A stretch of DNA of 64,000 nucleotides. Source: Eutreptiella sp. 'Long Island Sound 2002'. Its lineage: Eukaryota > Protista > Euglenida. A model generated the notes under the pieces. That model made no database searches and was not told the origin of the DNA. It worked only from the letters and a program-made list of their open reading frames with translations. Numbering within the stretch: position 1 is the stretch's first letter; each line of letters begins with the position of its first letter. The translations under genes were made by a program, and so were the position numbers. The stretch spans positions 18,166,001-18,230,000 of the forward strand of contig OZ038378.1 of the NCBI GenBank assembly GCA_964036045.1. The letters run 5' to 3'. Positions 9,452 through 11,519 of this stretch are shown here, piece by piece.

Positions 9452-9569
9452 ACCCCCCCCCCGTGTCCAACGAACAATTCTGTCCTCAAAAAATACGGTC
9501 CGAACAGGTAGTGTTCGTTGGACACATTGTTCGGTGTGCACGACAATCTAGTGAAACGGTGGTAACACA

Positions 9570-9930
9570 TCCCTTGGCACAAGACACCCATCCCATTCAA
9601 AGCACAACATGATGGAGGCTTCCGCTTAGCACTTTTCAAAGTAGAAGCCCTTGCTGCGGTCCCGCTTCATGCAGAAAAATTGAACATGCTCCCCGGGCTT
9701 GGGGCTCTTCTTGGCACAGGTAGACGTGGCAGCCTGAACCGACTTCGGCACCTTGGGGACGGACAGATTTGATGGGACAACATTGTCAAATCTTGGGAGC
9801 AAGTACACGGTGTTCTCAAAAACATGGCACAAACCCACACCCCACGCCTTGCCTTGGCCCAAACCATGCCAGTCTGTCCATCATCGTCACTATCACAGTC
9901 ATCAACACCACTACTATCATCAGAGTCACC
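9570..9930 (-). pseudogene. Acidic tract plus unassigned C-terminal module (VWAKARRGVWG.CHVF...GEHVQFF..KRDRSKGF)
   Basis: Translation across one frameshift near 9835. Homologous peptide at 18780-19120. Confidence 0.55.
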
Positions 9931-10149
9931 TGAATCATCCGTGTCAGTTTGGGACCCATTGTCAGAGTCGGACTCGGGATTATGCTTGCGGAAAATTTTT
10001 GTGTCCTCCAATTGGGACAACTTCAAACCACTTGGAAAATAGGCCGTGCGGCATGCTTCGTGGATGGCATCATCCGCAATGGTTGCAAAAGCACACAAAA
10101 CCTAGTTTGCAACCTCTTTACGAGAGGGCCGAGGTACCGGCCCCTGCTT

Positions 10150-10550
10150 CTTGGTCCGGCCCATGATGTGTTCTTCTGCCCACATGGCGTACTCCTCCTC
10201 CAACGGCCCTTTTGAAAATGCCATTGAACCCAGGCTTGTCACATTCTTGTGCATATGGCGTGCCATTGGCTAGTCCAATGAAAATGGGCATGGAAACATG
10301 AGATGACGGAAATGCACGGCAAACTGAAACGTGCATATGACAGGGAGCACCGTCACCGCATACACTCCCGTTTCACCTTCATCACGCACAATGAAGATCA
10401 TGGCTGCCTTATTGTTTTCCCCTTTTGCCGTCACCGTTTGTTCAATACCAGGGCAAACATTATTCCACTTCAAGGCAATCAACTCACTTATAATTTTGCT
10501 GTTTGGTGTTCTCTTCCATATTAGCACCATATTTGCCCTTCTTGCCATGG
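10150..10550 (-). pseudogene. pogo/Tigger-like DDE_1 transposase catalytic region, frameshifted
   Basis: [21 protein letters not shown] (DDE_1 N-part-like), then in another frame DGAPCH (D at 10354-10352) and NGTPYAQECDKPGFNGIFK (D at 10240-10238). This matches the pogo pattern N.T...Q..D.G.N..FK. Confidence 0.7.
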
Positions 10551-10730
10551 GCGCTTGGCACGTGGCTCATCGGCCGCAATGCCGGTGTTGGTGGCGTTGT
10601 GGGGCTTGAAAAAGTCCACGGGTGTGGAGTGATTGGGCACCGGCTTCGGTGGTGCCTTTCGCCCGGGGGGTTTTGCCCTCAGGGGAGGGTGTGTGTGAAG
10701 CGTGTACAGAGGAGTATGCTGGGGGGGGGG

Positions 10731-10826
10731 GGGGTCCTCCCATTGGGTCTCCTGCTTGGTGTGGTTCACATAGAACACACGTCCATCAGGGGTGTGGCAT
10801 TGCTCCCAACCAGGTGGAAGGGGAGG
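10731..10826 (-). CDS. WW domain coding segment inside the transposon relic
   Basis: Translates to [32 protein letters not shown], with the canonical LPxGW...GRxFY.NH...TQWEDP pattern and both Trp intact. Confidence 0.9.
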
Positions 10827-11519
10827 GCGTGATGGTGGGGAGGCAGGGTGACCACGAGGCGCGGGTTGTGGGGTCAGCCAGGTGCAAGTAGAGAATCAGT
10901 CATAGGACACCTTTCCCTGACATCTTGCTCTATAATTTTGCCCACCATTACTACAAGGTACAGCACAATAGCCCCTCATTTCCCCAATCCTTTAGCCTGA
11001 GACCTGGGTTTTAAAGTCCGGTATCTAATTAAATCTCTAATTAATTAGGTCCCCAAAAAATACGGTCCGAACGGGAAGTGTTCGTTGGACACAGTGTTCG
11101 TTGGACACGGGGGGGGGGGGGTCTACCAACCTCTCTTTGAGGTGATTTTATTGCCTTGGGCAAGTCCACCTCGCAGAGAATCTGCCCCAAACAATGAACC
11201 TCCAAGTGGCTAATTTTGCAAGCATCCATGAGATCCATCCACATCATGGCTTTCCATAGCTTTATACATACTCCCATTGTCACCAAATAATCACCCAACA
11301 ACAGCCCAAGGGTCCTTGGCATTGTCGGAGGTCGCCAAGGGACCATTCTCCAGCCAACCCATGCATGCTGGCATGAAAATAGGGGAGCCAATCTGGAAAA
11401 CTTGGAGATAGCACCCGGGACTCCCGTCATTGGTTAGGTGGTCCATATCGAAGAAAAAAGTGGAATGGGACTAGGGTCTGAATCAATGCACAGTGGCGGC
11501 TTTAGGCCAACCAACTTTT

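Follow-up and report, generated by a model that had tools for sequence, protein, structure and literature searches.

Cut-and-paste transposases usually consist of a DNA-binding head and a catalytic core. In the pogo superfamily (Tigger, pogoR, Passer, Lemi, Mover and Fot), elements of 1.2-5.2 kb encode transposases of 300-977 amino acids with a DD29-56D catalytic signature, and the traits listed for the group are TA duplications, short inverted repeats and helix-turn-helix (HTH) types (Gao et al. 2020, PMC7386202). Neither among its five types of DNA-binding motif nor in its domain schemes does the same survey show a WW, Tudor-like or beta-rich module. For the Drosophila pogo transposase, a PCNA-binding motif is placed at the C-terminus in the passage of PMC4231638 that cites Warbrick 1998. 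Pogo transposase bodies with add-ons for protein interaction or DNA binding also occur in POGZ, POGK and CENP-B, which are immobile single-copy host genes without termini. We describe here a pogo-like element from the euglenid Eutreptiella sp. 'Long Island Sound 2002' whose predicted transposase carries a WW domain. The element lies on the minus strand at positions 9453 to 11121 of the window, by which we mean the whole stretch of 64,000 nucleotides that was analysed (assembly GCA_964036045.1, contig OZ038378.1, positions 18,166,001 to 18,230,000). We consider it quite probable that this is an old, internally deleted and non-autonomous copy of a pogo-superfamily terminal inverted repeat (TIR) transposon with a WW-bearing two-exon gene, in which the WW domain serves as a docking module.

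The euglenid family shares with the pogo superfamily its TIRs and TA duplication and a DDE_1-type core whose DD37D spacing falls within DD29-56D, and it has a putative bipartite N-terminal HTH with an HTH_Tnp_Tc5-like region. Its elements, of about 2.9 kb, are within the 1.2-5.2 kb range, and the roughly 780 amino acids to which the exon reading frames add up, as an unjoined sum, would fit the range of 300-977. A PCNA-type motif is present as in Drosophila pogo, but the PIP-like box is N-terminal here and C-terminal there. In contrast, the WW domain with its PPxY motif, the Tudor-like N-terminal module and the beta-rich C-terminal module of the euglenid family have no counterpart among the motif types and schemes of that survey, and the termini of the family start with a long C homopolymer. 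Whereas POGZ, POGK and CENP-B are fixed in their hosts, the euglenid fusion is mobile and multi-copy, and its add-on is a WW domain. This domain has its top sequence matches in WW domains from NEDD4-family ligases (NEDD4L WW4, Itch WW3, WWP1); unlike these proteins, the element has a single WW and no C2 or HECT domain, and its WW is located inside a transposase with its own PPxY directly after it. Chromoviruses and other elements with tethering or chromatin-reading modules offer a parallel, in that a mobile-element enzyme bears a small interaction domain, the integrase chromodomain, presumably for host docking. However, chromoviruses are long terminal repeat retrotransposons and the domain is a different one; targeting has been demonstrated there, whereas we infer it for the WW transposase.

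Identity of the WW domain and its place in the transposase

In the window copy, the WW domain was recognized by Pfam (PF00397) at 10820-10731 with an E value of 1.3e-14 and 54.4 bits, against a cut-off of 26.9, and in the scan of the genome it reached 55.9 bits, the second-best WW genome-wide. An earlier note on this DNA had placed an intact, canonical WW at 10826-10731. The domain is indeed intact, reading LPPGW...TQWEDP with both Trp residues (criterion: 20-22 residues apart) and the closing Pro kept, but it starts at 10820, the position 10826 adding two residues. The best matches among solved structures (Protein Data Bank) were NEDD4L, Itch and WWP1, with per-domain E values of about 1e-6. 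The WW domains of these three proteins are of the PPxY-binding class, and the WW of the element bears all signature residues of that class; by its sequence it appears closest to the class I, PPxY-binding type.

The genome searched was the 2.28-Gb assembly, which has contigs of up to 193 Mb and in which the window is part of contig 1; a first look yielded at least 2,734 candidates for the family in it. Searches were run exon by exon, with L034:1888-2682 as reference for exon 1 and L031:2773-4212 as reference for exon 2. We analysed five longer copies (L031-L035), three of which have both ends present. The WW domain was present and in frame in all five. In another copy, L007, a frame of 438 amino acids extends over the Tudor-like stretch and the WW as far as the DDE region, bridging an in-frame deletion, and the metagenome relative P0008 joins the Tudor-like module, the WW, the HTHs and the DDE domain in one open reading frame (ORF) of 634 amino acids. 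The suggestion of the earlier note that a transposase family is fused to a protein-interaction module thus agrees with what was found: WW and DDE share one ORF in L007 and P0008, and the WW is in the transposase frame in these two and in the five long copies.

The WW and the PPxY are kept together in about 20 copies, in which the motif reads PPAY, PPSY or PPTY and is in frame. Eight loci of the same genome matched the whole of exon 1 at 36-43% identity, and in six of them a WW above the Pfam cut-off stands at the corresponding place, as judged by coordinate overlap with the genome-wide Pfam WW scan. In the metagenome relatives P0008 and P0019, too, Pfam recognises a significant WW at the equivalent position; in P0019, which comes from another metagenome, it is intact (E 9.3e-9) and followed by LPSY. 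Altogether, the relatives with a WW span 36-46% identity. The ratio of nonsynonymous to synonymous substitution rates (dN/dS), obtained from two open exon-1 copies of different subfamilies at 77% identity, was 0.21 for the whole of exon 1, 0.17 for the WW and PPxY and 0.25 for the HTH region, and this estimate is conservative since decay after insertion raises the ratio. DDE copies without the WW, to which the earlier note had looked as evidence of a one-off chance insertion, turned out to be larger internal deletions: their 5' end is fused to points well within the DDE region, and the WW was lost together with neighbouring parts. Comparison of these sequences supports the view that the WW is an integral part of the transposase, kept under purifying selection.

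The window copy and its family

The features of the element in the window are given below in the 5' to 3' direction of the element, together with the evidence by which each was located.

11095-11121, minus strand: 5' terminus, homopolymer run (13 C as read along the element strand) with the 14-mer GTGTCCAACGAACA
10877-10903, minus strand: start of the remnant transposase gene, MTDSLLAPG (peptide mapping; compared with exon 1 of L033 and L034)
10821-10892, minus strand: Ser/Pro-rich linker, 5' of the WW (translation; tblastn to exon 1)
10731-10820, minus strand: WW domain, intact, closest to the NEDD4 or class I type (Pfam; genome scan; solved-structure matches)
10708-10725, minus strand: PPAY (PPxY) codons, out of frame with the WW (translation; peptide mapping)
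10608-10631, minus strand: degenerate PIP-like box, HSTPVDFF, which is QPTLTDFF in other copies (motif reading)
10528-10545, minus strand: deletion junction (blastn, window copy versus full-length copies)
10105-10524, minus strand: DDE_1-type catalytic remnant with frameshifts and stops (tblastn, 58% identity to L031 exon 2)
9868-9975, minus strand: acidic Asp/Ser-rich tract (peptide mapping; kept in relatives)
9626-9867, minus strand: C-terminal beta-rich module, VWAK...GVWG...HVF...GEHVQ.F...KGFY, with stop (peptide mapping; tblastn; conservation)
9453-9476, minus strand: 3' terminus, inverted copy of the 14-mer plus homopolymer run
9375-9452, no strand assigned: flanking direct repeat outside the element, downstream copy; the repeat as a whole counts 82 nt at 9375-9456, with its 91% identical partner at 11122-11203 (repeat search)

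The inverted termini claimed in the earlier note were confirmed by an inverted-repeat search, which returned arms of 24 nt at 9453-9476 and 11095-11118 that are 100% complementary and consist of the homopolymer and GTGTCCAACGAACA. A second copy of the 14-mer stands in tandem by the 5' terminus (11092-11079) and a further one is located inside the element (9512-9525), where 67 nt subterminal to the 3' terminus repeat the other end; by pattern count there are four 14-mers in the window against 0.03 expected. The order of Pro-rich stretch, WW, DDE remnant, acidic tract and C-terminal module also stood as the note had it. Its DDE_1-like catalytic region is present as a remnant, but only the C-terminal two thirds of the domain are left, divided among three frames and interrupted by stops. 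Of the catalytic Asp codons, the second (10354-10352) and the third (10240-10238) are kept, while the first has been deleted. At the junction of 10528-10545, blastn showed that about 1.05 kb is gone, comprising the psq-like HTH, the intron, HTH_Tnp_Tc5 and the first catalytic Asp. The note was right to recognise no CENP-B-type HTH in this copy, because the internal deletion removed both HTHs; in full-length copies, a psq/CENP-B_N-like helix region stands ahead of one that resembles HTH_Tnp_Tc5 (E 6.8e-4). The Tudor-like module of full-length copies was likewise deleted from the window copy, immediately past MTDSLLAPG. The PPAY is out of the WW frame because of an indel in a run of 14 C (10734-10721), and the C-terminal module, which ends with the stop codon at 9628-9626, contains a single frameshift. 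Applied to the ORF pieces of the window, Pfam found the WW only, with no match for the DDE and remaining pieces, and an NCBIfam search gave no match; the DDE remnant is recognisable solely through its 58% amino-acid identity to full-length copies. The window copy is a pseudogene and not coding-competent as a whole.

Many copies of the family are nested internal-deletion derivatives that retain both termini. Full-length copies measure 2,851-3,039 nt and are 93-97% identical to one another and 82-84% identical to the window copy (blastn). One other copy, L002, has both deletions of the window copy and yet is only 81% identical to it, from which we conclude that the window copy belongs to an older non-autonomous subfamily. 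Aligned copy ends (n=56) read TA followed by C(4-17) and GTGTCCAACGAA, the bases outside the homopolymer being mostly TA. In complete copies TA stood on both sides in 12 of 22 and on one side in 9 of 22. In L057, a WW-bearing locus of the family at about 183.4 Mb on the same contig, exon 1 is 96% identical. The window itself holds a second fragment (18826-19074, minus strand) that encodes the C-terminal VWAK...GEHV module; it comes from a different subfamily, being 40% identical to the main family and near P0005 and P0040.

Several other repeats were encountered during these searches. The 82-nt flanking repeat lies across the point where two abundant repeat families meet, with at least 746 and at least 1,477 candidates, and L015 and L054 are likewise located between long direct repeats. 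A 48-nt satellite, one frame of which reads RFVVWPLELGLGTHNP, substitutes for the 5' half of some copies (L018:1-1500, L024:900-1500) and extends over more than 1.5 kb. The flank upstream of the element in L032 (element strand 1341-1586) contains a Tudor-like stretch, GDRVFHTRSNGVRVPATVVG..., that apparently belongs to another element. A Euglena-type spliced-leader word had 5,458 occurrences at no more than one mismatch, against 0 for the reversed control, which marks the host as a euglenid; the occurrences are dispersed on both strands (for example C1:29492-29515) and far exceed what a tandem spliced-leader RNA array would lead one to expect.

Gene structure and assignment to the pogo superfamily

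In full-length copies, exon 1 comprises the start, the Tudor-like stretch, the Ser/Pro linker, the WW, PPAY, the QPTLTDFF box and a psq/CENP-B_N-type helix region, in this order. The exon 2 reference is open over 480 amino acids and carries the HTH_Tnp_Tc5-like region and the DDD domain, followed by the acidic tract and the C-terminal module. Between the exons we predict a phase-2 GT...AG intron, exon 1 ending in AG/GTGTGT and exon 2 beginning past CTCCTGCAG/G. The exon phases match, so that the reading frame would be kept across the predicted intron, and the predicted junction aligned without gaps to the uninterrupted ORF of P0008 as well as to P0019, P0020 and P0023. The intron also harbours a tandem duplication with a unit of about 85 nt, whose copy number varies between copies (L031:2600-2810; L033, element strand 2575-2870).

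Direct Pfam searches with exon 2 of L031 gave HTH_Tnp_Tc5 at E 6.8e-4 (20.0 bits against a cut-off of 22.2) and DDE_1 at E 0.015, covering profile positions 16-175 of 177. DDE_1 was found beneath the cut-off in three relatives too (E 0.002-0.014), in the correct domain order with HTH_Tnp_Tc5. A profile of six family members was then compared with 1.84 billion representative proteins, and yielded 1,076 matches at E <= 0.001, mostly fragments. Among the distant matches, five long proteins (P0123, P0134, P0136, P0145 and P0156) were hit at E values of 1e-16 to 1e-19, and all five bear DDE_1 at 1e-22 to 1e-29 according to Pfam. HTH_Tnp_Tc5 exceeded the Pfam cut-off in P0134, P0136 and P0145 (4.6e-6 to 1.6e-11) and fell just under it in P0123 (E 0.001), while Pfam found none in P0156; P0134 additionally gave weak, sub-threshold CENP-B_N and BrkDBD matches. 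When exon 2 was aligned jointly with these distant proteins, its residues D103, D237 and D275 matched their N.DET, lD...H and QP.D motifs, giving DD37D, and the HTH region of the family aligns column for column with relatives that are positive for HTH_Tnp_Tc5. The psq/CENP-B_N-like helix region upstream of HTH_Tnp_Tc5 was seen by alignment alone. In a tree with four unnamed ordinary pogo proteins, the family formed a separate clade with 100/99 support and a long branch.

On the strength of the profile links, the aligned triad, the TA duplications and the inverted repeats, together with putative HTH regions of the types listed for the group, we have filed the family in the pogo superfamily, within the IS630-Tc1-mariner group. 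The AlphaFold model of exon 2, made from a 6-row alignment, had a pLDDT of 49 and was unusable; a word search with P0008 matched itself only, and a scan of JGI metagenomes with P0019 gave no match. P0130, a predicted protein of 563 amino acids, combines a ubiquitin hydrolase (UCH) fragment with the HTH and the first DDE part of a family relative, and could be either a genuine fusion or a chimeric gene model.

Beside the WW, the transposase appears to contain further modules. QPTLTDFF in exon 1 matches the PIP-box pattern by motif reading, and this PIP-like box may recruit PCNA. The N-terminal module is called Tudor-like from the appearance of its sequence. The C-terminal module is conserved across 38 relatives, and the acidic tract is conserved in relatives as well. 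AlphaFold modelled the C-terminal module with five strands (pLDDT 61.6); Foldseek returned no match at E <= 0.001, VIA-align gave a best Z of 3.2, and comparison with the protein atlas gave a best score of 0.76 and no cluster match. Its identification as a PWWP or Tudor domain received no support from the fold and atlas searches that were run.

Possible roles of the WW domain

We propose that the enzyme would cut and paste at TA, like other pogo elements, and that the WW would be a docking module retained by selection, to the transposon's own benefit. The self-association role that we favour is a link in trans between transposase subunits, made by the WW-PPxY pair, which might help to assemble or to regulate the paired-end complex; a PPxY protein of the host could be an additional or an alternative docking partner of the WW. 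The element's own PPxY begins one residue past the Pro that closes the WW, whereas LPSY is found about six residues further downstream of the domain in P0008 and P0019. WW domains are known to fold with this Pro packed against the side that faces away from the ligand groove, and enzymes of the Tc1/mariner type work as dimers. The PPxY would be too near the WW to fold back onto its own domain, so that binding in trans appears simpler. A full self-complementary handshake between subunits, formed by the WW and the adjacent PPxY and openable by host PPxY or WW proteins, is nevertheless a tentative proposal that we regard as rather unlikely to hold as it stands.

The main rival, itself rather doubtful, is that the WW mainly tethers the transposase to a host PPxY or phospho-Ser-Pro protein, such as a chromatin or transcription factor, and thereby steers integration or nuclear import, with the PPxY offering a separate handle to WW proteins of the host, for example ligases of the NEDD4 type. 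The class of the WW, which is the one that binds PPxY ligands, agrees with such a tether, as do the other docking-type parts of the same protein (the Tudor-like module, the PIP-like box and the C-terminal module) and the binding of the host factor PCNA by the pogo transposase, as given in the cited passage of PMC4231638. However, the strict co-conservation of the WW with its cognate motif is more simply explained by a self-complementary pair. Two further explanations were considered. The earlier note had also considered a captured host exon travelling with the element. Had such an exon been taken up once by a non-autonomous element (Pack-type transduplication) as passive cargo, one could understand that the window copy is non-autonomous and that its WW frame differs from that of the neighbouring remnants. 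Yet the WW was in frame with the transposase in 5/5 long copies, it recurs in subfamilies and in relatives at 36-46% identity, the WW and PPxY evolve at a dN/dS of 0.17, the domain has no boundaries of its own, and the copies that lack it have larger deletions which took neighbouring parts too. An exon of the Pack type is expected in non-autonomous copies only, outside the transposase frame and neutral, and none of this was observed. The integral, in-frame and conserved WW leads us to reject the captured exon, which we find scarcely credible. It is also very improbable that the WW-transposase represents host genes domesticated as a family, a fusion like POGZ or POGK, instead of a mobile element, and that the window holds a pseudogene of it. 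Domesticated pogo genes with extra fused domains are known (PMC7386202), and some of the divergent loci have open frames of 340 amino acids; against this stand thousands of candidates at unrelated sites, with TA duplications and with inverted termini that have been conserved, the existence of nested deletion derivatives, and a retained catalytic triad. A domesticated gene would be single or low in copy number, with neither termini nor target duplication, which is not what the genome contains.

The reading of the window copy as a decayed member of a pogo family with a docking WW has its own difficulties. P0020 and P0023 pass from the Tudor-like module through a short linker to the next motif and have no WW; the WW is therefore dispensable in at least some lineages, and the WW cassette is an indel within the wider clade. 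A tree drawn for gain against loss of the WW did not separate the order of the ingroup and fits either. Since the direct HTH_Tnp_Tc5 and DDE_1 scores are below the curated cut-offs, membership in pogo rests on transitivity. The two-exon gene model includes an intron that is a prediction from sequence, and both exons were open in 0/5 long copies, so that current activity may not be taken for granted. The window copy is flanked by GA and TT, with no clean TA duplication, and direct repeats of about 80 nt adjoin both of its ends where TA is expected. The element may simply have inserted into DNA that was already repeated in tandem. Finally, the function of the WW, whether self-association or host docking, is a proposal made from sequence. 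All these points weigh against the interpretation given here.

Full-text literature searches found no paper that joins a WW domain to any transposase. We have thus found no report of the WW as a transposase add-on, and it is apparently new, although a blank in the literature is not proof. For the annotation of the euglenid genome, it follows as a warning that isolated WW 'genes' are often transposon debris. To our knowledge, the way in which partners or targets are found in chromatin is known for few cut-and-paste transposases. The transposon family described here appears to keep a WW domain and its own ligand motif under purifying selection, together with a PIP-like box and two further modules, and it would offer a natural system for studying how transposases make use of docking modules that eukaryotes already possess. 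Ways of tethering engineered transposases might be derived from it as well. If the handshake is true, it would be a built-in, host-tunable switch for the assembly of the cutting complex or for the choice of integration site, and a mode of transposase control undescribed for any cut-and-paste element.

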